From Podarcis bocagei (taxonomy: Eukaryota): a stretch of 54,952 bases of DNA. The notes under the pieces are model-generated. The model had not been told where the DNA came from. It saw only the letters and a program-made list of their open reading frames with translations, and made no database searches. The position numbers and the translations under genes were made by a program. This document shows, in pieces, positions 1 to 52,674 of this stretch (position 1 is the stretch's first letter; the number at the start of each line of letters is the position of its first letter). The DNA lies in assembly GCA_964188305.1 (NCBI GenBank), contig OZ076896.1, one strand, 5' to 3'.

Positions 1-390
1 CTGCTATTCTGGATATGTATTGGGAAGGGACAAAAACCGGGGATGGGAGGGAGGGAAGAAGAGAACCTTAAAAACACTCAAGACCTTTAGGTTTAGTTAA
101 TATGACTTTTAATTAAGACAAAATGAGAAATCGACGGAAGAGAACTTGAGTCCAACTTAGGAAAAAACTATTTTGTTTATAAAAAAGGTAATAAGATGGT
201 TAAGAGGAGAAACACCAAATTGCTGACACAATCTTGGGAATTGGGATGCACGAGGGGGGTGGGGGGAAGTCTGGGGATAGGGTTAGGAAACTAGGTTTTT
301 CGGAATTTATACATGTTTTTGTCTTGTGTCTTTTTTGTGTGTGTTTTGTCTTTATAAAAGTGGAAAAACCAATAATTATTTTTTTTTTAA
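1..390 (+). mobile_element. L1 LINE 3' end/3'UTR fragment (runs off window start)
   Basis: A-rich strand, G-rich tract followed by GGAAGTC (265-271), then T-rich block and AATAA; same layout as the other L1 3'UTRs in the window. Confidence 0.65.
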
Positions 391-534: not shown

Positions 535-1300
535 TTTCTTTTCTTTTTTATAAATATTTTTTATTCATTTTCCAGTTTTAAAAAAATTCACACTAATAAC
601 AAATCAAGCCAAATCTTGCCACATTCAAAAACAAAAAACAATACCCCAATTATAGAGGCTGAATTAAATAATTTCAATGGGACTTCCCATGTTCTGGATT
701 TCAAGAGCTAACGTCCATCCTTTATTTTCTACTTTCTTGTTTGTTACTTCCCAATTTTCCAATCCCGATATTGACCATCCTCCTCTCTCAATCAGTCACT
801 GTTATAATTCTCTATCCTGTCCTGTTTCACAATTCCATATTTATATAATCATGCAGGGGGCAGATTTTTGTCATGCAGCAAAGTCAAAATGCAGAGTCTT
901 CACAGTAAATGATAAAACTTTTACTGAATCAAACAAGCAAAGTAAAAACAGAAGAAGATTAGACTAGGCTAGGCAGCGCACTGTAAATGATACAGTATTT
1001 GTACAAGGAATGAGTCATCTAGACTAGAGGATGAGTCAGGATGAGTCAGCTAGCTGAATGAGTCTGCACTTTTCAGCATTTTTCCAACACTTTCTACACT
1101 TTACTGCCTCTGCTGTCAAAGACCTTTGTCACATGACAATTTTTTCCATATTCTTCTCAGTCATAATATTCTGAAGCATAGTCCTCCCTCAATGACCCCT
1201 CCTTTCTCTGCTGATTTTTGCTCTAAAAGGCTCTGGGCTTCCATCCAAAGTTGAAGTTAATTAGCACTGTCTTTGATCTTTCTAAATAAGCTAATGTTTC
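535..1300 (-). mobile_element. Degraded L1 3' fragment interrupted by a solo LTR
   Basis: T-rich tail and TTTATT at ~541-565, GGACTTCC at 680-687 (reverse complement of the 3'UTR motif); the distal part (1144-1300) reads weakly like the ORF2 C-terminus (LAYLERSK...WKP). Confidence 0.5.
869..1138. mobile_element. Solo LTR (270 bp)
   Basis: Inverted termini TGTCATG...CATGACA; 5-bp TSD ATTTT at 864-868 and 1139-1143. Confidence 0.7.
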
Positions 1301-1479: not shown

Positions 1480-2290
1480 GGGACGCGGGTGGCGCTGTGG
1501 GTAAAACCTCAGTGCCTAGGACTTGCCGATCGTATGGTTGGTGGTTCAAATCCCCGCGGCGGGGTGAGCGCCCATTGTTCGGTCCCAGCTCCTGCCCACC
1601 TAGCAGTTCGAAAGCACCCTTAAGTGCAAGTAGATAAATAGGTACCGCTTTATAGTGGGAAGGTAAACGGCGTTTCCGTGCGCTGCGCTGGTGCTGGCTC
1701 ACCAGCTGCAGCTTCGTCACGCTGGCCACGTGACCCGGAAGTGTCTTCGGACAGCGCTGGCTACCGGCCTCTTAAGCGAGATGAGCACGCAACCCGACTA
1801 CATGGAATTGGCAGAAATGACTGACTGGCAGAATCCGAGACCAGGGAGAAGAGTTGGTGAAAGAAGACTGGAAGAAATTTAAAGACTATTTACAGAAATA
1901 TTGTAAAATTAATGAATGTTAGAAGGATGTTGGATAGAAACTAAGGGGTTTCCAGCTATAATGCTTTAGGAGATACGAAAAAAAAAGGTTTATAAATGGG
2001 TAAAAGCTTAATGGTAAGGATTTGCTGAACTAGCAAATTGAAGTGGAATACAAAGAAGGGAGGTATGAGGAGGTCTGGGGAAATAAGTGTAAGGAAAATA
2101 TGTTATGGAAAATTATTTGTTTTTTAACTGTTTTTATGTTGTGATTTGTATTTTGTTTCTTTTTTTTTTCATTGTTATATTTTAAAAACTTTAATAAATA
2201 TCTTTTGGGGAAAAAAGAAGAAGAGATGAGCATGCAACCCCAGGGTCGGTCACGACTGGCCCGTATGGGCAGGGGTACCTTTACCTTTAC
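1480..2290 (+). mobile_element. Sauria SINE (Squam1) split by an L1 insertion (SINE parts 1480-1795 and 2223-2290)
   Basis: GGGACGCGGGTGGCGCTGTGG head, B-box GGTTCAAATCC, AAGTGCAAGTAGATAAATAGGTACC core, (ACCTTT)n tail. Confidence 0.92.
1796..2222 (+). mobile_element. 5'-truncated L1 3' end inserted in the Sauria SINE
   Basis: Encodes DYMELAEMT...EDWKKFKDYLQK, similar to the ORF2 end of the large L1; AATAAA plus A-rich tail; 18-bp TSD GAGATGAGCAYGCAACCC at 1778-1795 and 2223-2240. Confidence 0.92.
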
Positions 2291-3194
2291 TTTAAGTGGT
2301 ACCTACCCATTAAAACTGAATTTTGTATGTCTGCATTGCATTTCACAAGATACTGGTACATCACAAATACAGCATAATGGCCAGTGGAGGTGGGGGAAGG
2401 ATCTTGAAGATACCTGGAATAACTGAAAGTGACCATCAAAAGGAGTCTACTGTGCTGGTATTCTCCTTCCATATAGGGAAGAGCCTCCCTGTGCAGCAAA
2501 ACTGGGGAGCAGGTCTTAAAAATGCCTCTTTTCACCTGTTGCAAGGAGCACACAAACTGTCATACCATTCCAACTGAGGCTGCAAACATTGCGTAACTAA
2601 ATAAAATGTTTGTTAATAAGAAAATTTGCTTTAACAGCTGTTTTATTTAATTCAGTATAGAAAGTTGCCATTGTGGAGTTATTTAGTATACATATTTGGT
2701 TGCTGTGTATGTGTGCTCAAGCGTGTATGTGTATGTGTGCGCGAGGCATCATTAGTAACCATTAAACCTGAAATTATTATTCGGAGCACATTCAGCAACC
2801 AACAAGCAGAGAATCAAGTACTGTAATATTGCATATTAGCATTTGATAGGAACTAAGACATTTTCTTTTTCATTAGTAATTGAAGCAAGGCAAAGAAGTT
2901 TTATTAGTGTCTGAAGCTGGAAATCTTAAAATAATAATAAAAAATGCACCAGCTGCCACGAGCTTATTCTAATCTCGCTCTCTTATGCATGTAAAGAAAG
3001 ACATAGTGGTACAATTTGCAATAATGTTCACTAAACAGTTTAGATACAAATTAGAATTTTAGTAGCAAATGACTTGCACTTAAAAACAATAACTACTTGA
3101 TTTTTTTGGGGGGGTGGTATGTGTGCTTCTAGTGGCTGCATATAATCTCTTTGTGTGGCATTTGTAGCCTCTTGGTGAGTCTGTCACCTCAAGA

Positions 3195-3352
3195 AGGGCT
3201 CTAATTTGGTGGTAGAGCACATGCATTTCATGCAGAAAAGTCTCAGGTTCAATCTCCTCAGTCTGGAAACTGGAGAAGCACTGTCAGCCAGTGTCAGCAA
3301 TCTGGGGTAGATGGACCAATGGTCTGATTTGGTAGAAGGAAGCTTCCTATAT
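3195..3352 (+). mobile_element. tRNA-derived SINE, Squam2-like, degraded
   Basis: GTGGTAGAGCA...TGCAGAAAAGTCTCAGGTTCAATC head; TAGATGGACCAATGGTCTGA...AAGGAAGCTTCCTAT 3' part. Confidence 0.65.
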
Positions 3353-3371
3353 CCTTATACCCTTGCCATAC

Positions 3372-3742
3372 TGTCAGTAGTGAGTTGTGAGTGCTAGCGA
3401 AGATAAGAGTTCGGGAAACCAGCCATATTTACAGAATTTATTGCTCCTTTGAAGCTATGTACAAGCAGTTCAAAAGTTTGACTCATTCATGGCGGGCCAG
3501 TTGTCCCGACTGGCTTTCCTTTCGATTTTCCCCAGCATAACCACTTTCTAAGCCCAGCCCCCCTCCTTCCTCTCTGACGAGAGTGGCTTGTCCCCGGAAG
3601 TACCTCCCCCCTCTCAGATTCATTACCTCCTGACAGCTCTTCCTCACACTCCTCGTCCGAGGAAGAGCAATTACTTATTAAAGGACCCTTCTCCTGGTAA
3701 GTTCCCATTCTTTCCCCTTTCTCTGGCTCCAATTCCCTGACA
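3372..3742 (-). mobile_element. Solo LTR (371 bp)
   Basis: Inverted termini TGTCAG...CTGACA; perfect 5-bp TSD CATAC (3367-3371, 3743-3747); AATAAA on the - strand at ~3438-3443. Confidence 0.82.
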
Positions 3743-3981
3743 CATACTTAACAACTGGTCATGCAGTGAAGCTGGAGAAGAGTCCAGGGATTCTTAGATT
3801 GCTCTCAAATGTTCCGTTTGTTGAGTATTCATTCAGTTTTGTTTCCAGGGAAGTTGAATGGCACCAGCTATTTTCTGAACAGTCATCCTGGCTTGTTTTC
3901 AGCAAGGCCAGACAAGGTTGCATGAAGCATTACCACAAACTTCCCAGTGTGTTCCCCCATTCCATTCCTTGTTGTAAAACT

Positions 3982-4580
3982 CACCTCACAGAGTGTTTAT
4001 TGTGGGGGAGGAAGGGAAAGGAGATTGTTAGCCGTTTGTTGTTGTTTAGTCGTTTAGTCATGTCCGACTCTTCGTGACCCCATGGACCAGAGCACACCAG
4101 GCACTCCTGTCTTCCACTGCCTCCCACAGTTTGGTCAAACTCATGCTGGTAGCTTCGAGAACACTATCCAACTATCTTGTCCTCTGTCATCCCCTTCTCC
4201 TTGTGCCCTCCATCTTTCCCAACATCAGGGTCTTTTCCAGGGAGTCTTCTCTTCTCATGAGGTGGCCAAAATATTGGAGCCTCAGCTTCAGGATCTGTCC
4301 TTCCAGTGAGCACTCAGGGCTGATTTCCTTAAGAATGAATAGGTTTGATCTTCTTGCAGTCCATGGGACTCTCAAGAGTCTCCTCCAGCACCATAATTCA
4401 AAAGCATAAATTCTTCGGCGATCAGCCTTCTTTATGGTCCAGCTTTCACTTCCATACATCACTACTGGGAAAACTATAGCTTTTACTATACGGACCTTTT
4501 TTGACAAGGTGATGTTGAGACTCCTTAAGGGGAGTGAAAGGCGGGATATCAAGTCCAAACTCCTCCTCCTCCTCCTCTTC
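3982..4580 (+). mobile_element. Squam3-like SINE 3' half split by Bov-B (parts 3982-4037 and 4516-4580)
   Basis: The two parts join to match the intact copy at 22798-23045 (GGAGATTGTTAGCC..TTT|GAGACTCC...GCGGGATATCAA..CCAAACTC + CTC/CTT tail). Confidence 0.8.
4038..4515 (-). mobile_element. Bov-B (RTE clade) LINE 3' fragment
   Basis: Translation VKAIVFPVVMYGSESWTIKKA..RRIYAFELWCWRRLLRVPWTARRSN..ILKEISPECSLEG..LQYFGHLMRR.DSLEKTLMLGK is the Bov-B ORF C-terminus; (CAA)n-type tail. Confidence 0.95.
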
Positions 4581-19925: not shown

Positions 19926-21842
19926 CTCCAATGTACATTCGTTAGGCCCTCCCTGCACTGGCTGTGGCCTTCATACAGCTGTGATGGCAAACATGGTTGC
20001 CATGCAAATTGTGGAGCTACTCTTGAATGTGGTTGATGAACAGAGAAATACATTCCTTTCTATGGTTGCTGAACCGAGAAATATATTCTTTCTGAAAAGG
20101 CAAGGCGAAGCAATTGGGAGAGTATATCACAGAAGCTATTCTTAACATTGATGCGGAAATCAGGGAACTTGGCACGACCAGAGAGCGATGTGCCCTAAAC
20201 AGTCTCTTTATGGTTTGGTTGTGATAAAGGGTATATTTAGTTAGATTGTTAGTTGCTAAGTCCACTGTGTGTGAGGTTCATGACTAAGGGATAAATTGTA
20301 ATGGTACAGAACTGGCATTGGCATGAAGTGGATTGAGGGAAAAAGAACAGAGAAACTGTAGATGTTTTTAGACTTTCCAGGACTGGCTAATGATAGTTTA
20401 GGAATTAAAGAAGCTTTGGGTTGTGTATGAAGTATGTTGGCCAATTATTAGAATATGTAACTGCAGCTCTTTTACACAAGTGAATCACTTTCCTGCCTGT
20501 TTACAGATAGGTGGTGGTAGAATCTGTGGTATATATTTTATAGGTTTTAAAAATATACTCCCAATACTTCCTGATTTGAAGGCTTCAACATTTTACTCTT
20601 TTATGCAAAGGTGAGTTTTCAATCATTTATGAAATATGCTCTTGTCCTTGAGTTGTTTCCTAGGGTACATAATTTCATCTTAATTAATTGCACCTAGGCA
20701 GAAAATATTTTTCATTCCCCCCCCCCTTTTAAAGGCTGCTCAGTTTGACAGAAGAATAATTTTCTCATTGTAAAATTAAGAAAAATGCTAAATTGATAAG
20801 GGCAAATGAAATTAGTTTGGGGAACTGCACTGTACACAGAAAACTGTTGTAGAAATAATTAGCACAAATCTGTTTTTCATGGTACAGAAATTATTTCAAG
20901 TTGTACGATGCTCATATTTCAGCTGCAGGTGAACTCTGTCTATAAATGAAGCAACATTTCTCTTTCTTTATGTGAAAAATATATACATTGACTGCAAACA
21001 TTTGGGGTTTTCTCCTGTCAGCCAGCAAGAATGGAAGAATGACAGTTTGGCTTGTGACAGCTACAATATAGGCAAAGCACGATTGCAGATGAAATACATC
21101 TATTTTCCTGCCTCTTGCATGTATATGTTTGTGGTATGGAATTGGCAAAAGAGACCAGCCTGGTATGGAGATTCCTCATTTGCTACAGAGCTGACCATGC
21201 AAAATGTGTGGCTAAGTCAGCAGGATAAGGAAAACTAGTGCATGGTGTTCACTGATGTGCCAAAACCACCCCTTTCACTTTGTTGGACTATGTACTTCTT
21301 TTGCTGATGTGCATTACAACCGTCACCATTATTTCAGCTTTGTGACTCTACTGGTCTTTGTGTCTATTTAGGTGATATGTGAGGAGCTGATTGCAGTCTT
21401 GATGTGACCAGTTTATGCAGACAGGTCTCAGGCCACTACAGTTTTTCAGTGTATGCAAGCAGCAATAATAAAGGAATGGATTTCTGGGTAAAATTCCATA
21501 TTTTTTAATCAGGCTTAGCTAGAGGAACTAGTTTTTCATGGCAAGGATGTTTTGTGCTGAATCCCAGCATGCCAGTTTTTGAATGTCAGGACTGAGATAA
21601 TCAGCATGTCATGCCATTCTTCTCTGAACTATGAGACAGTAAATAGTCAGGTATTGATCACTGAAGCATCAGCATTATAGAAGCTCAACCTGAGCAGCGC
21701 ATGAGAAGCAGCATATAAATGATGAGCAAAACAGCAAGTCAACTACTGCACATTCTCTATCCCCAACCTCATGCTGCATGATTTTAGCATATTGTAGAAC
21801 TAAGAATATTGTAGCAGGCAAGTGACACATGGAACTCTTTGG

Positions 21843-29652: not shown

Positions 29653-29973
29653 GCAATCAAAACTGATGGAATATGCAGAGATAGTTAAATTTGCTAGAAG
29701 AATAAGAGATCAAGATGAGAGACTTTTTTTTAATAGAATGGGGGGAAATTGTCAAATGTATGACATAACTTACAGGGAGTAAAAAGATTAAATTTGTAAA
29801 TAGGTTTGAATTGGTTATGTAGTAAGATTGCAATTTAAATTAGAAATCACGGGGGCGGGGGGATTTGAAGAAGATGTAGGTTGAATTTGGTTAGATTTAA
29901 TTTTTGTTGTTGAAATATTGTAAAATGCAAAAATTGAAAAATAAAATATTTAATATTTGACAGTAAAAAAGAA
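29653..29973 (+). mobile_element. 5'-truncated L1 3' end
   Basis: WQSKLMEYAEIVKFARRIRDQDE; AATAAA and A-rich tail; perfect 17-bp TSD GGAATTATAAACATTTG (29636-29652, 29974-29990). Confidence 0.9.
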
Positions 29974-36948: not shown

Positions 36949-38811
36949 CTTTTCTCTTCATAGTGGCCAGCTTTGGCAAAGGTAGGTTGCCCATGTTCAT
37001 CAATACATGTTTGCCATTGAAATCCCAGTTTCTATATTTGGGACTTCCAGTCACCACAGCCATTTTTAGTCGGAAATGCTTTGTATTAAATCATGCGTTT
37101 CTCTTTCCCCATTTCTGGCAACATGGAGAACAGGACTAAGTGTACTTAGGATCTTAGCCTTAGTGATGCCTTCTTCTGTTAGTGGATACATTTTTAAATT
37201 GGGAACTCTTTGCTACATTTTGAAAGCATTAGATTCCCCGTTTCTTCCTGAGATTGCAAAGCTTTACCGAAGCAGAGAAACATTTGCCTTGTTTATGAAC
37301 AAACAGGTGCTATAATGTTGCAGGTGGCACCCTACCACACAGTATTAAAAATGTATGTTATTTTGTTTATGTGAGTGGCATGCTAGTGATATTTGGCACA
37401 GATATTTCCAACAGAGGATTTCTTTTTAAATGAAAGTGGTTGTTTTGCTCTTAAAGTGGGATGTTTACATGAACATGCAATATTGTGCTTTATATTTTCA
37501 ATTAAAGTGCAGGAACATATGAGAAGCATTTAGGCTCCTCAAAGGAGAGATCGCTAAATTTTTTTTTTTAAAAAAACCCAAAACCAAAATCAAAATACTT
37601 TTCATTAAGAAGATTGGGGTGGGGGGAGGATATAGACATAGAAAATGGATTATGCAAAACTACTCAGCCAGAATCCACTTTGTTGTGACACAAGGCGACT
37701 TAAGTGCTAGTTTAATTACTTTAATTGTTAGTGTCCTAGATTTCAGTTCCTTTTTTTTTCTAGGTAGAAAGGTCCTCAAGTGTATCTATAATTCCCTCTG
37801 CTAATTTATTCTGTGTCATTATTTACTGAAAGCATTAGGCTTTGTTTAGTAAAAGTTCCCCAATGAATCAAATTATGGCACTGTTACTGCCTGTGTAAAC
37901 AGAAGGACAAGTGCATTAGTAAAGAAATCACTCTCATCATTTGGGAAGATGTGCATCTAACGATGAAAGGTTCCACAGCCCTACACTCAGCTTTAACAAG
38001 CAAGGAAAGCTGCCTACCTTCAGCATCTTTGAAACCCTAATCACTTTGAAAGAAGCGACAACTTAAACTTTGGTGCTGGGCATCCCATTCCCATAAAAAA
38101 ACACTTTAATGGCTGTGCTGCTATGCCCTACTTACCAAATACACTCCCCTCTCACTACTAAGGATGGATCACAGTGACTTTCATCACTGTTTATGACGTC
38201 TGTGCCAATGAGCAACCTACATTGCTCACAAAGTATCTTTGCTAGTAGTTTCTACATGCTGTGGGAATCCTGAGCTTGCACAGGGTCCCCAGCATGTGTG
38301 GAATATATTGCATAACCTGACGCCTATTATCTACACATCATAGGCAAGTATACCTTATTTATACAGTCCCTCCATTTCAAAAAGGGAGTGGGTGGGTTGT
38401 GGGTGCATGCATCTGCTCCCATGCTCAGGACTTGCTCCAGTACATAACCCTAATCTTTCCTTATATAGGACTCTTTGTATTTACAATGAAAGTAGCCTGT
38501 TCTCTAAGAATATAAGAATAAGACCAGAGTTCTGTCTATTCCAGGTGCTAGACACCACTATGGCTGCCACTGTACTCCCAGGCCCAAAATGTTTTGAGCT
38601 GTAACAAAGCTCAAAAACTGGCACTTTTGAGAACCTCTTTCTCATTTTGGGCTATTTTCTTCCTTGTTTCCATATCACCGTCTGGTGTTTTCCTTTCCCA
38701 AACAATGACGCCGTCATCATCGCCATTTTATGAATCTCCTTTCACATGTGTGCCACAGCAGTTTGCAAACAGATTGTAAAAAAACAATGGAACATAGTTT
38801 TAAAAACAGTA

Positions 38812-39074: not shown

Positions 39075-39700
39075 GAGACCTGCCTTATACTGAGTCAGAC
39101 CATTGGTCCATATAACTCAGCATTGTCTACACTGACTGACAGCAGCTCACCAGGGTTTCAGGCAAGGTTGTCTCCCAGTCCTACCTGAAGATGTTGGGGA
39201 TTGCATCTGGGACCTTCTGCAACAGCAGCAAGAATATTATTGGCCCAAAAATGGAAGCAAGAAGAGTTACCGTCGATTGAAGAATGGAGGATGAAGCTAA
39301 TGGACTATGCAGAATTAGATAAACTAACAGGAAGGATTCGAAACTGGCGAGACCAGAAATTCACGGAAGACTGGAGTAAATTTATGGACTATTTGAAAAG
39401 TACCGGTAATTGTGAAGAACAGATGATGTTTGTAGGGTTGCAAGAAGTTTTGTGAGGAGTATTATTAGAAGTATTGTAAAAATGGACAAGGGGGAGGATG
39501 ATTTGTTAAGAGATGTAAAGGCAATCTAAAGTTAAGAAATGCATAAGAAGTGGTTAAAACGATGGATCATCAGAGGTGCTGATGGAAGTCCAAAAAGATT
39601 GTATAAGTGATAAGCTTTGTGGTACATTTTATAATTTATATGTTAAAATTAATAAAAAATTACCTTCTGCATGCAAAGCAGATGTTCTACCACTGAGCAC
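39075..39700 (-). mobile_element. Squam2-like SINE split by L1 (parts 39075-39221 and 39662-39700)
   Basis: CTGCCTTATACTGAGTCAGACCATTGGTCCAT ... GGGACCTTCTGCA|TGCAAAGCAGATGTTCTACCACTGAGC. Confidence 0.85.
39222..39661 (+). mobile_element. 5'-truncated L1 3' end (divergent lineage)
   Basis: TAARILLAQKWKQEELPSIEEWRMKLMDYAEL...; AATAAA; 10-bp TSD ACCTTCTGCA (39212-39221, 39662-39671). Confidence 0.92.
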
Positions 39701-45797: not shown

Positions 45798-45821
45798 TGT
45801 GTGTGTGTGTGTGTGTGTGTG

Positions 45822-45847
<26 letters not shown>
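45798..45847. repeat. (TG)n(CA)n perfect 50-bp palindrome
   Basis: 25-nt TG arm directly abutting a 25-nt AC arm, centre GTAC. Confidence 0.92.
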
Positions 45848-45854
<7 letters not shown>

Positions 45855-46291
45855 AGGTTATTACTTCCTTGTTTGGTTCAGAACCTGATTGTTCTTTTAT
45901 TTCTTTGCAATATTTTCTTTCTGAAAGGGCAGATTTTCACAATATATATATATTTTTTTATAATAGTTTTTTATTGCTTTTTTTTCCAAGGTCAGAATAC
46001 ATCGTCAGTAACACAACAAAAGCGGTTTTACAGAAAGAAAAAAAGAAATTATAGAAGAAAATTCACTTTTTCAAATCAATTTTCATGATCAACCGGACTT
46101 CCCCACGTCCTCCATCCCCTGCTTTCTTTACAATAAAAATAAACAGCAAATTAATACCTTATTTCATATGTTTTTGTGCTTTCATTTGGTTATATAGTCT
46201 GCAATTTATACTTTTCTAGATCATAACTTGGTTTCCATCATTTACCAATCTCAATACTGAAGCATGTTTTTCCCAAAGGCTTAGCAAATTC

Positions 46292-48025
46292 TCAACATTC
46301 ATATAACTTATAGTGTTTTTGCAAATAGTCCTTAAATTTTTTCCAGTCCTCTTCCACTTCCTCTTCTCCCAGATCTCGGATTCTGCCTGTCATTTCGGCT
46401 AATTCCATGTAGTCCATCAGCTGCGAATGCCACTCTTCCAGCGTGGGTAACTCCTGTGCCTTCCAATATTTAGCTATAAGGATTCTTGCTGCTGTAGTTG
46501 CATATAAAAAGAAAGTTCTATCTTTCTTTGACACTCTCTGGCCCACAATGCCCAGGAGGAAGGCCTCTGGTTTCTTGTGAAAGGTGTACTTAAACACCTT
46601 TTTCAACTCATTATAAATCATTTCCCAAAAAGCCTTCACCCTCGGGCATGTCCACCAGAGGTGAAAGAATGTTCCTTCAGCCTCCTTACATTTCCAACAT
46701 TTATTGTCAGACAGATGGTATATCTTTGCAAGTTTAACTGGGGTCATGTACCACCTGTATACCATTTTCATAATGTTTTCTTTTAAGGCACTACATGCCG
46801 TGAATTTCATACCGGTGGTCCATAACCTTTCCCAGTCTTCAAACATAATGTTGTACCCAATGTCCTGAGCCCATTTTATCATAGCTGATTTAACTGTCTC
46901 GTCTTGAGTATTCCATTTAAGCAACAAGTTATACATTCTTGAAAGCACCTTCGTCTTAGGTTCAAGTAGTTCTGTCTCTAGTTTTGATTTTTCCACCTGG
47001 AAACCAATTTTTTTATCCTTTTTAAACACCTCTAGAATTTGGGCATAATGGAACCAATCTCGCACCTTTCCCTTCAATTTTTCAAAGCTCTGCAACCTCC
47101 AAGTGTCACCATCTCTTTCAATTAACTCACAGTATTTTGCCCAGCCACTCCCCATGTTACGTAGTTTAATGGCTTTAGCCTCCGTCGGTGATAACCACCT
47201 CGGGGTCTTACTTTCAAGTAAGTCCTTATATTTAGTCCAGACAATGAATAGAGCTTTCCTGACAATATGGTTTTTAAACAGTTTATGAAGCTTTACCTTG
47301 TCGTACCACAAATATGCATGCCACCCAAAAGCATTACTATGCCCTTCCAGATCTAGGACATCAGTGTTTTCTAGCAGAAACCAATCCTTCATCCAGCAGA
47401 AGGATGCAGCTTCATAATACAATCTTAAGTCCGGCAGGGCAAACCCCCCTCTTTCCTTTGCATCTGTTAGTATCTTAAATTTTATTCGGGGCTTTTTGCC
47501 CTGCCAGACAAACTTCGTGATATCCCTCTGCCACTTTCCAAAACATTCCACTCTGTCCACGATCTGGAGGGTTTGGAACAGAAACAACATTCTTGGCAAT
47601 ACATTCATCTTAACTGCTGCAATTCTTCCCGACAAGGAAAGTTTCAATCTTGACCAAGTTTCTAAGTCCTTTTTAATTTCCAACCAGCATTTTTCATAGT
47701 TATCTTTAAATAGATTCAAATTTCTCCCAGTCAAGTTAACCCCCAGGTATTTCACTTTTGTAACCACATTTAATTCTGTTTCCTTCTGGAACCCATCTAT
47801 TTCTGATGGTGTCAAGTTTTTTGCCAAAACCTTAGTTTATTGTTTGTTCAACTTGAATCCCGCCACCCGACCAAACTCAGAAATTAGTTCTAAGGCTCTT
47901 TTTGTACTGGTTTCTGGCTCCTGTAATGTCAAAACCAAATCATCTGCAAAGGCCTTCAATTTGTATTGTTTTTCTCCGACCTGTATTCCTTCCACCAGCT
48001 GATCCCTCCTAATCAGGTTAAGCAT
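46292..48025 (-). pseudogene. ORF2: L1 ORF2 C-terminal half (RT FADD, KYLG, CCHC knuckle) with one in-frame stop
   Basis: LKAFADDL, VKYLGV, ERGGFALPDL, CWKC...FHLWWTC; the 47837-48025 and 46292-47827 ORFs are in the same frame, separated by a single TAA. Confidence 0.95.
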
Positions 48026-48423
48026 AAGATGGGCTGCCTGGATACAAGTAACATCGGACTGCGGTAACTGTATATAAATACAAAGTTATATTGGGCTACT
48101 TTGTAGTGGCAAAAAAAAAAAAAGGAACTGTTGCATGCACCTTTGTCAAGAACCTTTATTCTCTGCAGTTAAAATTGAATGTGGAGGGTTCCCTGTTTTG
48201 GACTTTATTTGGCCTTTTTTTGGGGGGGGGGACTTAATAGTAGGAATTTTCCATCCTTCCTTCCTTCCTAACTTTTTGGGAGCTCCCCCTACTGGATTGC
48301 AGAACTATTAGTCTCTGAGAACTGCTGGTTGACTTGGAACTTTTTATATCTGGATGTTTACTATCTTTTGGATTGTTTCCCATGGGATTTACAATTTGAC
48401 CTTGACTCAGGGACAGCTGTGGA

Positions 48424-49482
48424 ATGAGTGGCGCAGCAAAAACAAGGGCTGGAAAGAAAGCAAAACAAACTGAACTTTTGCAAACAACTTTGCCTGTGCA
48501 GCTACGTAGATCGTCTGTTCCAATTGTGACAGGTCTGCAAGAAGGACAACCTATACAGCCACCTCTTGGGGAGATGGCTGCTGGAGGGTTAGATCCTGTC
48601 TCCAAAGAAATATTGGACCAACTGGCAGCATTGAATAAGAAAGCTGATGAACAGGCAGCTAGATTTGATGAACAAGCTGCTAAATTTGACCAGGTGACAG
48701 CTTCAATCAATAAATTGACAGACCAAGTCACGAAGAATACACAGGCAATAGGTAATATTGAAAAGACTACAACAGAAAATCGAAAACTAGTCGAGGAAGT
48801 CAATACAAAAGCAGACGAAAATAAAAAGAGGATAGAGGAATTAAGAGGAGAGGTAAGACCACTGAGTAGACAGGTTACTGAACAGCAAGCGTACCTGTCC
48901 CTGGCAGAACTGAAAAACAGGGAAAGCAATCTGAGGCTTAGAAATATTCCAGAACTAGAAAAAGAGGACTTGATTAGCTTCTTGACAACAGAAATATCCA
49001 AGTTCTGGGGATTGGCAGAAGAGAAGGACTTTAAGATCGTCACCGCCTTCAGATTAGGAAGAGTGGTCAAGAAGGATAAACCAAGAGATTGCCTGGTCAT
49101 TTTGAGATCTAAGCAAGAAAAGGATAACATACTCGGCCTGCACTTTAAAAATTCATTGGTGATACAGGGAAAGACGGCAGAAATCTTCAGAGACATACCA
49201 AAACAACTACTGGAGTTAAGAGCTACATATAAAGACCTAGCAAGCTTATTGAGAAACAACACAATCCCTTATAGGTGGGAATTCCCTCAAGGACTATCCT
49301 TTACCTTGAAAGGAAGGAAGGTAAGAATTAGAACAGCAGAGGAGCAAGAAAAGTTCCTAAACGACCACGGGGAGGACCTTCGGAAAGGAGTAGCAGGAGC
49401 CTGGCCACCTCCTTCGTTTGGCCTCAACCCGGTTCCACCTCCAGATACAGAAGACAAAGGAGACACTCCCACTGACAAATAA
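48424..49482 (+). CDS. ORF1: L1 ORF1p (coiled coil, RRM, CTD), intact 352 aa, inside the inverted segment
   Basis: Heptad-rich coiled coil, RESNLRLRNIPE, KPRDCLV, IFRDIP, YRWEFP; ends 11 nt before the ORF2 ATG. Confidence 0.92.
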   Translation: MSGAAKTRAGKKAKQTELLQTTLPVQLRRSSVPIVTGLQEGQPIQPPLGEMAAGGLDPVSKEILDQLAALNKKADEQAARFDEQAAKFDQVTASINKLTDQVTKNTQAIGNIEKTTTENRKLVEEVNTKADENKKRIEELRGEVRPLSRQVTEQQAYLSLAELKNRESNLRLRNIPELEKEDLISFLTTEISKFWGLAEEKDFKIVTAFRLGRVVKKDKPRDCLVILRSKQEKDNILGLHFKNSLVIQGKTAEIFRDIPKQLLELRATYKDLASLLRNNTIPYRWEFPQGLSFTLKGRKVRIRTAEEQEKFLNDHGEDLRKGVAGAWPPPSFGLNPVPPPDTEDKGDTPTDK

Positions 49483-49493
49483 ATTGATCCAGG

Positions 49494-51480
49494 ATGTCTC
49501 TGCAGCTTCTTAGTTGGAATATTCATGGCGCAAACTCTCCCGAGAAAAGGAAAAAAATCTTTCATATATTGAGAAAAGAACAATTGGACGTCATTTGCCT
49601 TCAAGAAACACATGTGACTAGGCTCCACAGGAGAGTGCTAATTAATAAGAGACTAGGCCAAGAATTTATTTCATCAGACAAGGTAAAAAAAAGAGGAGTA
49701 GTGATCTACGCAAAGGAGAGCCTAGTACCAAAATTGGTGTTTAAAGATGAACAAGGAAGAATTTTGGCGATTGAAATACAATCACAAGGAGAAAATTTTT
49801 TGATAGTTGGAATATATGCACCAAACGATGGGAAATCAGAATTCTATAAGAGGCTGCATGAGATAATGCTGGACCACATTGACTATACTAACATCATCTT
49901 GATGGGAGATATGAATGGGGTAGTCTCCACTTACATGGATAAGTCACAAAACCAAAATTTGAACAAGGACGGCAGACTTCCAAAGACTTTTTTTGAACTG
50001 ACAGACAATATGGATTTGATTGATATTTGGAGGACAAAGAACCCTCTAGGTAAGGAGGGAACATTCTTTTCTGAGGCCCACCTATCTTGGACAAGAATCG
50101 ACCAAATCTGGACATCTAGAGGACTGGCACCTAAGACAAAAAAAATAGAGATCTGCCCCAAAACTTGTTCCGACCATAACGCTTTGAAAATGGACTTGAG
50201 ACTCACACCAGCCGGATCCTTCAGATGGAGAATGAATGACCACTTGTTTAGAGATCAGGAGATCGTGAAGAAGGCCCAAAAAATGTTGAAAGACTATTTT
50301 GAAATAAATTTGAATACTTCGGTGGAAAAGAAAATAATCTGGGACGCGAGCAAAGCTGTTATGAGAGGGTTCCTGATACAACAGAACACTATTAAGAAGA
50401 AACTCTGGAATGGTAAAAAGGACAAGATTTTGGACAAAATAAGAGATGGAGAGAAAAAGCTGAGACTAAATCCAAAATCAAAAGAAGTCTTAAGAGAAAT
50501 AAAATTCTATCAAACACAATATACGAAATTGATAAATCAAGAAATTGAATGGAAAATTAAACAGATGAAACAAAGATCATTTGAATCGGCAAACAAATGT
50601 GGGAAGCTGCTGGCATGGCAGCTGAAAAAGAGACAAAAATTGAACTTTGTTACCAATCTGGAGGTTGAAGGAGAGTGTATTCAGAAACCAGAAGAAATTA
50701 GAAAGTGTTTCCAGAGATATTTTAAAAAACTCTATACCCAAGGACCCCAAGCAGAGACTGAAATAAATAATTTTTTAAAAAGTCATGGCCTGCAAAAGTT
50801 AACACAAGACAAACAAACAGCCCTGAACTATAAAATAACACAACAGGAAATTGAAAGTGCCATTCAGAACATGCAAATAGGCAAATCCCCAGGCCCAGAT
50901 GGACTTACCTCCAAATATTATAAGAAGGAATATCTGATACAGCCACTAATGGAGGTATGCAATCAGATTTTGGAAGGGAAGGGGGCACCAGAATCGTGGA
51001 AAGAGGCATTCATTACTTTGATACCAAAATTGGAATCTGAAAAGACTCAACTTAAGAATTATCGTCCCATCTCACTCCTAAATGTGGATTACAAAATTTT
51101 TGCTGATATTTTAGCAAACAGACTGAAAAAAGTTTTGAATGAAGTAATTCATAAGGACCAAGCAGGCTTTCTCCCTGGTAGGCATTTGTCTGATAACACT
51201 AGGAATATTATTGATGTTTTGGAGCTACTACAGACAAATATGAATACGAAAGCAGCCTTGATTTTCATAGACGCGGAGAAGGCCTTCGACAATATATCTT
51301 GGAAATTTATGAAGAAAAATTTGGAAGGGATGGGAGTGGGAAGGGCGTTTCAAAATGGTATCGAAGCAATTTATTCAGAACAAAAGGCTAAATTGATAGT
51401 AAACAGTGTGGTGACAGAGGAGTTTAAAATTGAAAAAGGGACACGACAGGGGTGCCCCCTATCACCCTTGTTATTTATCT
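49494..51480 (+). pseudogene. ORF2: L1 ORF2 N-terminal half (APE endonuclease and first RT motifs), broken by the inversion; reading frame runs on to 51581 in antisense 5'UTR
   Basis: SWNIHG, CLQETH, IYAPN, GDMN, TRID, SDH; KSPGPDG, YRPISLLN, DAEKAFD, GTRQGCPLSPLLF. Confidence 0.96.
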
Positions 51481-51935
51481 TTTCCGCTTTAGAAAAGTCT
51501 TTGCTCGATACTTTAAACAGAGCCGGAAGACTGACTTCCTTTTTAGCGTCTCCCGCTTTCAGCCAAATTTCGCCAAATTAGGTTCAAATAAAGCCTCAGG
51601 TTTCTTACTCACGAGTAAGTTGTTTCAGTTCAGTTGTTCAAGGAAGAAAGGTCAGCGCTGATCAGCAGCAGCCGCGCGGCTTCGCTTCCGCGGAAAGAGC
51701 GATGGATTCACAGCACCGCTACCCCCTCCACGTTCCGATACCCCTTACGGGGTCTCTTCTGCGTTTCCGAGGTCGCTTCTGGTGCCCGCCGAACCCCATG
51801 GCCACGGGCTCGCTCTACCCGTGGTTTCTCTAAGTGGGTCGTCGCTGTGCCGCAGCGCACGACCCTTTTCCGCGGAGCCCCTCTTCAGCAACTGAAGAGG
51901 ACCGCCATTGCTGAACGCGCCGCCTCCGGAAGTCC
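51481..51935 (-). promoter_or_regulatory. L1 proximal 5'UTR / internal promoter, CpG-rich
   Basis: Begins GGACTTCCGG (ETS-type CCGGAAGT) followed by AATGGCGG (YY1-like); high CpG density at 51660-51930; abuts the TSD. Confidence 0.8.
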
Positions 51936-52674
51936 AGATTTTCACAATATAGATGCCAAGTGGAGGCCGCTCAAAACTACCTCTGTATCACAATGGCCGA
52001 TCCATGTGGTAAGCCCTTTTATGTACATGATTGCTACATTCCCTCCAACACCCCAAAATCGGGACATGGGTTTCCCCCCACATGCTTCCATGCAAGTCAC
52101 ATGACCTACACAAGATCACGGAGCTCAAAAGACACACTTTTTCAGGGCTGGACCCTAAAACACATTTGGGGGGGGCACCACGTGAGATTGTGCCCCCCAA
52201 GTGCTTTTTTCAGGATGAGATCTTGCCATGCAATCACAAAATTGCAGTACCCCAAATGGCTGCCATGCTCTCATGCAAGAAAATATTATTTCATGGGACA
52301 CTTGTATTATATGTGGCTCGGTGGTTTTCCTTCAACGGTTTCCACCTCTCACCAGAGTGCTGTTGGCTCAACAGGCGCAGCACATCCATTTTTATTATTA
52401 TTTCCATTTAGACACCACTTACTATCAGAAGATCTCGAAACAGTTTACAACAGATAAACACTATGCACACATGATGATAAAAACCATGCCTAGTGACTTG
52501 CATAGTAGAACAGATGCAAAAACAATAAGCAATATCAATAAAACCAGAGAACATTAATAAGGCAGCATAGCAATATAACTTGTACAACTGTCTGACTCAG
52601 CATTGCACATGATCACTACAATCATTCACTACTTCAAACAATTTGTTGACCAGCTATTCAAACATAAGCCACTG

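Follow-up and report, generated by a model that had tools for sequence, protein, structure and literature searches.

Apart from the poly(A) signal, and in mammals a G-rich polypurine tract to which a G-quadruplex role is attributed, the 3′ untranslated regions (3′UTRs) of L1 elements are usually held to carry hardly any sequence-specific information. The "stringent" members of the long interspersed nuclear elements (LINEs) carry a 3′ stem-loop that is recognised by their reverse transcriptase (RT), and one study is said to have proposed a stem-loop in the 3′ ends of human L1 and Alu. Outside the retrotransposons, the ends of long RNAs are known to pair through the cyclization sequences of flaviviruses and in the 5′–3′UTR pairing of cellular mRNAs such as p53. 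Here we analyse a 54,952-nucleotide (nt) stretch from Podarcis bocagei (contig OZ076896.1, assembly GCA_964188305.1; hereafter the window), in which an L1 insertion of the lizard "clade 1" type carries in its 3′UTR the octamer GGAAGTCC, with the core heptamer GGAAGTC, the complement of the first eight nucleotides of the same element.

The 5′ side of this arrangement has a published counterpart. The 5′ extremity GACTTCCGGTGN8ATGGCG is common to the Anolis L1 clade 1 families, a second clade in Anolis, with 3′UTRs of 96–154 nt, starts with GGGNGCTGCGCATGC, and the zebrafish L1 starts with GGACTTCCGGTT, which was equated by the authors with a transcription-factor (XrpFI) target (Boissinot and Sookdeo, 2016, Genome Biol Evol, PMC5381506). 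The L1 of the window begins with (G)GACTTCCGG, with ATGGCGG some 20 nt downstream, as in the Anolis clade 1 consensus and in zebrafish GGACTTCCGGTT, although 15 nt separate its two boxes versus 8 in the published consensus. For comparison, the published Xenopus L1 start is GGGGGCGTGGCC, the Anolis family L1_AC9 has a replaced 5′UTR, and zebrafish L1 combines a short 5′UTR with T-rich 3′UTRs. The same study gave lengths of 792–1465 nt for Anolis 5′UTRs and, citing Howell and Usdin (1997), described a G-rich polypurine tract in mammalian L1 3′UTRs; its own 3′UTR section reports purine, pyrimidine or T tracts and nothing on GGAAGTC, on a further copy of the heptamer at about +400 of the 5′UTR or on complementarity between the ends (PMC5381506). 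A full-text literature search returned this paper as its sole match and no paper on the 3′ motif or on end complementarity, and no cyclization-type pairing was found described for any LINE in the papers searched. A first-pass annotation of the window had offered the complementary ends as undescribed; the conserved terminus GACTTCCGG...ATGGCG, the 5′ half of the finding, is already published, whereas the 3′ motif, its twin at +400 and the complementarity of the ends appear to be new.

Comparison with the other systems reveals both likeness and difference. Like the mammalian polypurine tract, the squamate motif belongs to a purine- or G-rich conserved 3′UTR element upstream of the poly(A) signal, and in lacertids it often forms the 3′ edge of that element; it is, however, a defined heptamer ending in GTC or GTT, and it is kept without a G tract in Anolis, at window 39584 and in the fetched copies L002-18535 and L004. 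With flavivirus and p53 pairing it shares the presence, close to each end of a long positive-sense RNA, of short complementary words that are conserved across divergent lineages and could join the ends, but the L1 partner is the extreme capped 5′ terminus, and the putative helix would be of only 7–8 base pairs (bp), with no covariation seen. As with the 3′ stem-loop of stringent LINEs, a conserved cis-element of a LINE 3′UTR may matter for retrotransposition; unlike that stem-loop, the squamate motif is in no conserved local hairpin and is located 77–256 nt upstream of the A tail instead of at the very 3′ terminus.

Conservation of the 3′UTR heptamer

Eleven loci were fetched via L1 open reading frame 2 (ORF2) and ORF1 proteins, namely five from Podarcis lilfordi, one from P. 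raffonei, one from P. muralis, two from Anolis carolinensis, one from the snake Pantherophis guttatus and one metagenome contig (loci bear the prefix L below), and the ORF2 stop codons were located by tblastn. The resulting 27 L1 3′UTRs, two of them tail fragments in the window, fall into 17 groups that cannot be aligned with one another. All sampled lineages are clade-1-like, with 3′UTRs of 195–470 nt and ORF2 C-termini that are at least about 31%, mostly at least 40%, identical. Exact GGAAGTC was present in 8 of the 17 groups, compared with 0.18 expected from dinucleotide shuffles, and the degenerate form GGRRGTY in 14 groups, compared with 2.8 expected; neither group count was reached in any of 500,000 simulations. 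A census of all 6- to 8-mers placed GGAAGT (13 of 16 groups) and GGAAGTC (8 groups) near the top as the sole complex words beside AATAAA. Thus, the enrichment across L1 families that had been put forward as a check on the initial observation was confirmed, and the recurrence of the motif in divergent L1 lineages holds for three Podarcis species, Anolis and a colubrid snake.

The form of the motif varies with the lineage. Lacertid copies read GGAAGTC, GGAGGTC or GGGAGTC, the three motif-bearing Anolis copies read GGAAGTT, and one snake copy has GGGAGTC after a G run. In the most abundant family the variant GGAGGTC is itself retained in eight of nine diverged copies, and a full-length collinear L1 of another family in P. 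lilfordi (L003:5432-11450) carries the 3′ motif GGGAGTCC. G runs directly precede the motif in the window element (46103-46119), in the 3′ end at window positions 1-388 and in L003, L006, L008 and L011, and the lacertid motif is embedded in a longer conserved block, GGAATACAAAAAGGGAGGTnTGAGGAGGTCnnGGAAATAAG. In the element of the window the minus-strand context around 46102-46095 reads ...ggggatggaggacgtggGGAAGTCCggttg.... The motif sits where a purine-rich upstream half of the 3′UTR switches to a T-rich downstream half. The 3′UTRs had been described as poorly alignable with the motif at a similar distance from the poly(A) signal; the 17 mutually unalignable groups bear out the former, with the qualification that several lacertid groups share the block ATTTGCTGA...GGGAGGT...GGARGTC, and the latter has to be widened to the span given above between motif and UTR end. 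Three groups were scored as lacking the motif, and three old copies are without it or carry decayed versions; the copy at window positions 29653-29973, noted earlier as lacking the motif, indeed has only a degenerate GAAGAAGATGT in its 3′UTR. The one 3′UTR obtained from a distant clade (L010) showed no motif.

Within the window itself the excess is weak, as five exact matches to GGAAGTCC were found where 1.5 were expected, and 3 of 100 shuffles reached five. The fifth match (37041-37048, minus strand) lies outside any L1 UTR and is taken as chance because no L1 tail, G tract or poly(A) signal surrounds it. The positions first given for GGAAGTCC, its complement, GGAAGTC and GGAGGTC all proved correct. 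Since the heptamer is kept in lacertids, Anolis and a snake while the remaining UTR has decayed past alignment, a specific constraint exists in the L1 3′UTR. The heptamer GGAAGUC, with its family variants GGAGGUC, GGGAGUC and GGAAGUU, is very probably a selectively kept cis-element of squamate "clade 1" L1.

In addition, short L1 derivatives were observed at L003:18354-20900 and L006:7182-12163, which consist of a 5′UTR, part of ORF1, the last ~100 codons of ORF2 and a 3′UTR with the motif. The L003 derivative has two tandem 3′UTR units (20290-20528 and 20632-20864) that are 74% alike.

Complementarity of the L1 ends and its explanations

The sequence GGACTTCC is the true 5′ boundary of the retrotransposed L1 because a 17-bp target-site duplication brackets the insertion. 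On the minus strand the boundary reads ...tattgtgaaaatctG followed by GACTTCCGGAGGCGG..., with the junction at 51935; this first G is ambiguous, being assignable either to the duplication or to L1. In the full-length element at L003:5432 the 5′ end reads GGACTTCCGGTC, and as this element is bounded by a 14-bp duplication, CAAATTTGCAGATG, both initial Gs can be assigned to L1, the family type beginning with GGAC. The 5′ end at L006:6530 is identical to it, L011:8853 reads GACTTCCGG (a GACTTCC start without the first G), L003:18356 reads GGAACTTCCGG, and a further, degenerate 5′ end is found at L005:2641. The octamer at 46095-46102 is, as originally claimed, the exact complement of the first eight nucleotides at 51928-51935. 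The 5′ letters can also be read as signals in DNA. In mammalian L1 the start site is set by a YY1 box, which AATGGCGG resembles, and as ACTTCCGG is the canonical ETS word, a DNA-level reading of the 5′ motif is well founded.

Several observations point to pairing between the ends in RNA. When all 7-nt windows of three 5′UTRs were scanned, nt 2–8 (GACTTCC) had the largest number of 3′UTR groups with an exact complement (8), the next-best windows (5–7 groups) being low-complexity words; a count allowing G-U pairs was non-discriminating, as degenerate patterns match low-complexity tracts. Among 18 single-base variants of the 3′ motif, A4>G occurred eight times, C7>T four times and A3>G twice, with four other types seen once each, so that 14 of the 18 are exactly the three transitions that keep the pair with a fixed partner via G-U, and each of the four pair-breaking transitions was seen at most once. 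An RNA-level role fits these data because the variants are skewed towards wobble-keeping changes and the conservation is strand-specific. Predicted duplex energies of three lacertid variants with the 5′ 10-mer are −15.8 (GGAAGUCC), −15.3 (GGAGGUCC) and −15.3 kcal/mol (GGGAGUCC). Nowhere along the window element is a better duplex with the 5′ 10-mer predicted than the one formed by the 3′ motif (−15.9 kcal/mol), and the same holds for L003FL, of another family and with another variant (−15.4 kcal/mol). Co-folding of 5′UTR and 3′UTR predicted pairing of the 5′ end with the 3′ motif at a probability (P) of ~1 in both of these elements. The RNA-level constraint on the 5′UTR described below and the poor fit of the 3′ copies to ETS sites point the same way. 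Complementary words conserved across lineages are thus found near both ends of the RNA, as in long-range pairing elements.

A third copy of the heptamer complicates this picture. The sequence AGGAAGTC is invariant at +394 to +406 across six aligned lacertid 5′UTRs, with CTTCC 5–6 nt after it; the two together could form a small hairpin or represent ETS cores placed head to head. The copy suggests alternative helices, with a partner nearer to the 5′ end than the 3′UTR. In P. muralis, L011:9232-9252 (5′UTR +379) and L011:14741-14761 (3′UTR) both read GGGAGACGT, 4–6 nt, GGAAGTCCG, a likeness which hints that the heptamer modules are related but which is not significant against shuffles. Derivation of the 3′ module as a duplicate of the 5′UTR module at +360 to +402 (ATTTGGCTGAA...GGGAGACGT...GGAAGTCCG in L011) was rejected: the blocks look suggestive to the eye, but local alignment scores were not above those of shuffles (P 0.19–0.95).

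A number of points weigh against end pairing. No covariation was found, the sampled elements showing one-sided changes only; none is visible because, at family level, all five 5′ ends in the sample agree with each other and with the consensus published for Anolis clade 1 and zebrafish. The sole 5′ variant, GGAACTTCC at L003:18356, is uncompensated in its 3′ motif, and a search with frog L1 protein gave no locus with both ends. The count of variants is partly circular, because pair-breaking families would be scored as "motif absent", as three groups are. The helix never grows beyond 7–8 bp, since a G-rich sequence precedes the 3′ motif and would lie opposite G9-G10, and position 8 is C or T in just 15 of 24 copies. 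The co-folding, which ignores the 5 kb between both ends, fails in the L011 copy, which is without the first G, and when the 5′UTR was folded alone, the predicted probability of pairing between the 5′ end and the +400 copy was 0.85, 0.92 and 0.72 for three elements and less than 0.1 for two others, so that this copy may be the nearer RNA partner; it also allows the reading of a repeated protein-binding site. The predicted accessibility of the motif within the 3′UTR is unremarkable, and mammalian L1 is not known to pair its 5′ and 3′ ends. A local hairpin around the 3′ motif was considered as well and rejected, as minimum-free-energy and partition-function folds of 22 3′UTRs gave no consistent partner and ordinary accessibility. 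The original proposal of either end pairing or a conserved cis-signal is therefore upheld as to a cis-element kept across lineages, with wobble-keeping variants and the best predicted partner in two families, but not as to covariation. The heptamer most likely acts in RNA, and pairing with the 5′ end is the leading specific mechanism suggested by these predictions, to which we assign a probability of roughly 0.35.

It is somewhat unlikely, though only slightly less probable than end pairing, that the heptamer is instead a protein-binding site unrelated to such pairing, recognised by an RNA-binding protein, for example of SR or export type acting on a purine-rich stretch of an intronless mRNA, or by a non-ETS DNA-binding factor, so that the complementarity would be a by-product of one word re-used in both orientations. 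The site would then be used thrice, once in inverted orientation, at the 5′ end, and twice in direct orientation, at +400 and within the 3′UTR, and the existence of three conserved copies, two of them in the same orientation, agrees with this, as do a 7-nt core that tolerates purine-for-purine changes like many protein sites, the lacertid location at the 3′ edge of a purine- or G-rich tract within GGAATACAAAAAGGGAGGTnTGAGGAGGTCnnGGAAATAAG, the lack of a consistent predicted local RNA partner and a helix never going beyond 8 bp. However, no candidate protein can be named, an RNA-binding protein would leave the inverted 5′ copy unexplained, the motif persists without the G tract in Anolis and several lacertid lineages, and a plain need for purine richness does not predict the asymmetry by which A may change to G but G never to A. 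Sites for NF-kB (GGGRNWYYCC), U1 or 5′ splice-site-like sequences and nuclear-receptor half-sites (AGGTCA) were rejected on inspection, each fitting single copies only.

The more specific proposal that all copies are ETS-family DNA sites of the GABP/ELK type, which would act at both ends as promoter and downstream enhancer or in gene looping, explains the 5′UTR but not the 3′UTR, and we regard it as improbable. ETS factors prefer G or A after GGAAGT, and the 3′ motif has C or T there. The 5′ terminus contains ACTTCCGG, the reverse of the canonical CCGGAAGT, next to the YY1-like AATGGCGG; the +400 copy, A or C followed by AGGAAGTC, is a good ETS site with an inverted CTTCC partner 5–6 nt off; and the invariant core GGA(A/T) is present at the 5′ terminus and at +400 in 12 of 12 cases. 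In the literature, too, the zebrafish terminus is interpreted as a site for a transcription factor (XrpFI) and that of Anolis as a conserved start signal (PMC5381506), and of the three Anolis 3′ copies two have the sequences CAGGAAGT and TCGGAAGT. Against these stand the 3′UTR copies as a whole, where the core is not invariant: 11 of 24 GGRRGTY copies, including those of the most abundant family, have GGAG or GGGA cores and thus lack the obligatory GGAA, and the preferred A or C at −1 is seen in only 4 of the 13 GGAA copies (G in 6 of 13), compared with 12 of 12 for the two 5′UTR sites. An ETS site at both ends, an alternative raised in the first-pass annotation, therefore remains a good description of the two 5′UTR copies, in agreement with the literature, and a poor one of the 3′ copies. 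Absence of any function, with the 3′ motif a remnant of shared ancestry or a hitchhiker of the G-rich tract and the 5′ match a post hoc coincidence, is the least probable explanation. It draws on the facts that the sampled L1s all belong to one old clade, so that the groups are not fully independent, that the excess within the window alone is weak, that three groups lack the motif and that the similarity between the 5′UTR and 3′UTR modules is not significant; it is opposed by the persistence of the heptamer in lacertids, Anolis and snake while the flanks diverged past alignment, by group counts far above expectation, and by the chance, ~1 in 2,000 to 4,000 by our own estimate, that the top conserved 3′ heptamer would complement a conserved 5′ terminus.

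Structure of the window L1

The features of the window are collected in Table 1. The 17-bp direct repeat CAGATTTTCACAATATA brackets an insertion of 5,989 bp that terminates in AATAAA and a short A run. The element had been taken as full-length; both of its ends are complete, as the target-site duplication indicates, but it is not intact, since an internal inversion of 3,459 bp extends from nt 456 of the 5′UTR to the middle of the ORF2 RT. The element was analysed as three separate segments. The limits of the inversion were set by a collinear copy of the same family in P. muralis (L011:8853 to ~14990; ORF2 86–88% identical), and three public runs yielded contigs with the joints 48019–51478 or 48015–51457, on opposite strands, which is the collinear arrangement of other copies. 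The inversion is thus private to the window copy, as other family copies are collinear in L011 and in the read joints of three runs. Its layout differs from that of twin priming. The element ends, which are the subject of the motif finding, are untouched by it, and the target-site duplication is intact.

Table 1. Positions of L1 features and heptamer copies in the window.
Feature	Position	Strand	Basis or remark
L1 insertion, lizard "clade 1" type	45947..51935	-	Both ends complete, internal inversion; target-site duplication, ORFs, Pfam, alignment to collinear copy L011
Target-site duplication, 3′ side, CAGATTTTCACAATATA (+ strand)	45930..45946	.	Direct repeat
Target-site duplication, 5′ side	51935..51951	.	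Base 51935 common to duplication and first L1 G
5′ terminus GGACTTCC	51928..51935	-	ACTTCCGG (51926-51933) is a canonical ETS-type site
AATGGCGG, YY1-like box, L1 +27 to +34	51902..51909	-	AATGGC invariant in six 5′UTRs; fits published ATGGCG
Second 5′UTR heptamer GGAAGTC, +397	51533..51539	-	AGGAAGTC invariant in six lacertid L1 5′UTRs
5′UTR, first 455 nt, GC-rich, three stem-loops with compensatory changes	51481..51935	-	Alignment
Inverted internal block	48020..51478	+	Distal 5′UTR 48020-48423, ORF1 48424-49482, ORF2 N-terminal endonuclease and part of RT 49494 to ~51478
ORF2 C-terminal part (FADD box, thumb, CCHC)	46292..48019	-	Stop codon 46292-46294
3′UTR, 345 nt, AATAAA and short A tail	45947..46291	-	Sequence
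G-rich tract directly upstream of motif	46103..46119	-	Sequence
3′UTR motif GGAAGTCC, core GGAAGTC 46096-46102	46095..46102	-	Complement of first 8 L1 nt
GGAAGTC, 3′UTR of another L1 lineage (3′ end 1-388)	265..271	+	Sequence
GGAAGTCC, L1 3′ tail fragment	680..687	-	Sequence
GGAGGTC, 3′UTR of P0014-like L1 (ORF2 stop 1922)	2069..2075	+	Sequence
Old L1 3′UTR without motif, degenerate GAAGAAGATGT after G tract	29783..29973	+	Sequence
GGAAGTCC, 3′UTR of further L1 lineage (stop 39455)	39584..39591	+	Sequence

Pfam searches of the window ORF2, a gene split by the inversion, gave Exo_endo_phos (1.9e-16) and RVT_1 (8.1e-25), and its C-terminal part is 76–92% identical to ORF2 proteins of Podarcis L1. 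The product of ORF1 is 92% identical to a P. muralis protein. The closest proteins come from Podarcis, which places the genome in a lacertid lizard. With a 5′UTR of 455 + 404 nt (~859 nt in total), a gap of 11 nt between ORF1 and the ORF2 ATG (49494) and a 345-nt 3′UTR, together with its start and AATGGCGG at +27, the element matches the lizard "clade 1" type.

The first 150 nt of the lacertid L1 5′UTRs fold into three stem-loops, in which ten pairs show pair-keeping changes on both sides, for example CCTCTTCAG/CTGAAGAGG versus CCCTCCGAG/CTCCGGAGGG. The set comprised window 51790-51935 (minus strand), L003:5432-5580, L006:6382-6530, L011:8852-8997, L003:18354-18500 and L005:2497-2645. These stem-loops are evidence that the L1 promoter region is constrained at the RNA level, or at that of a palindrome.

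Single-cell RNA reads from a run with the same species label (X23) lie on the L1-sense strand of each segment, that is, on the minus strand at both ends and on the plus strand in the inverted block. As they follow the L1-sense strand of each segment, they derive from collinear family members transcribed in sense. No transcript start was callable from the reads over 45947-51935. A palindromic (TG)n(CA)n microsatellite is located at 45800-45857, ~90 bp past the 3′ target-site duplication. Matches to Rfam families were sub-threshold only and were discarded, several matches to microRNA families being artefacts of this microsatellite beside the element.

Proposed mechanism and meaning for L1 biology

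If the heptamer works by pairing with the 5′ end, GGAAGUC, as the complement of nt 2–8 of the 5′ terminus (G)GACUUCC, would form a helix of 7–8 bp with the capped end, for which the heptamer at +400 would be a second and closer candidate partner. Two states of the 5′ end could then alternate, one closed locally by a helix within the 5′UTR and one tied by a helix to the 3′UTR. The helix of the second state may tag full-length RNA or give it preference, or may alter how RNA is divided between translation and service as reverse-transcription template. The same 5′ letters may also serve in DNA as an internal promoter and start-site signal of ETS and YY1 type, and the published promoter reading of these letters does not conflict with RNA pairing. 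In its fullest form, the proposal is that the capped 5′ end of squamate L1 RNA, and perhaps of zebrafish L1 RNA with its identical 5′ terminus, switches between the +400 and 3′UTR heptamers, and that the 3′ state circularises the 6-kb RNA, thereby marking full-length transcripts for, or gating between, translation and target-primed reverse transcription; we consider this complete scheme unlikely as it stands and put it forward tentatively.

The heptamer is complementary to the only 5′ word of L1 whose conservation between zebrafish and lizards is known, and an unchanged copy of it stands at +400. If the scheme is true, L1 would possess a cyclization system as in RNA viruses, which has not so far been described for any LINE; if the motif is a protein site, it would represent a new host-factor contact of non-mammalian L1. 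The pairing proposal provides a concrete and cheaply testable hypothesis as to how a LINE could monitor whether its own RNA is intact, or turn this to use, which bears on both the preference for full-length RNA and cis preference.

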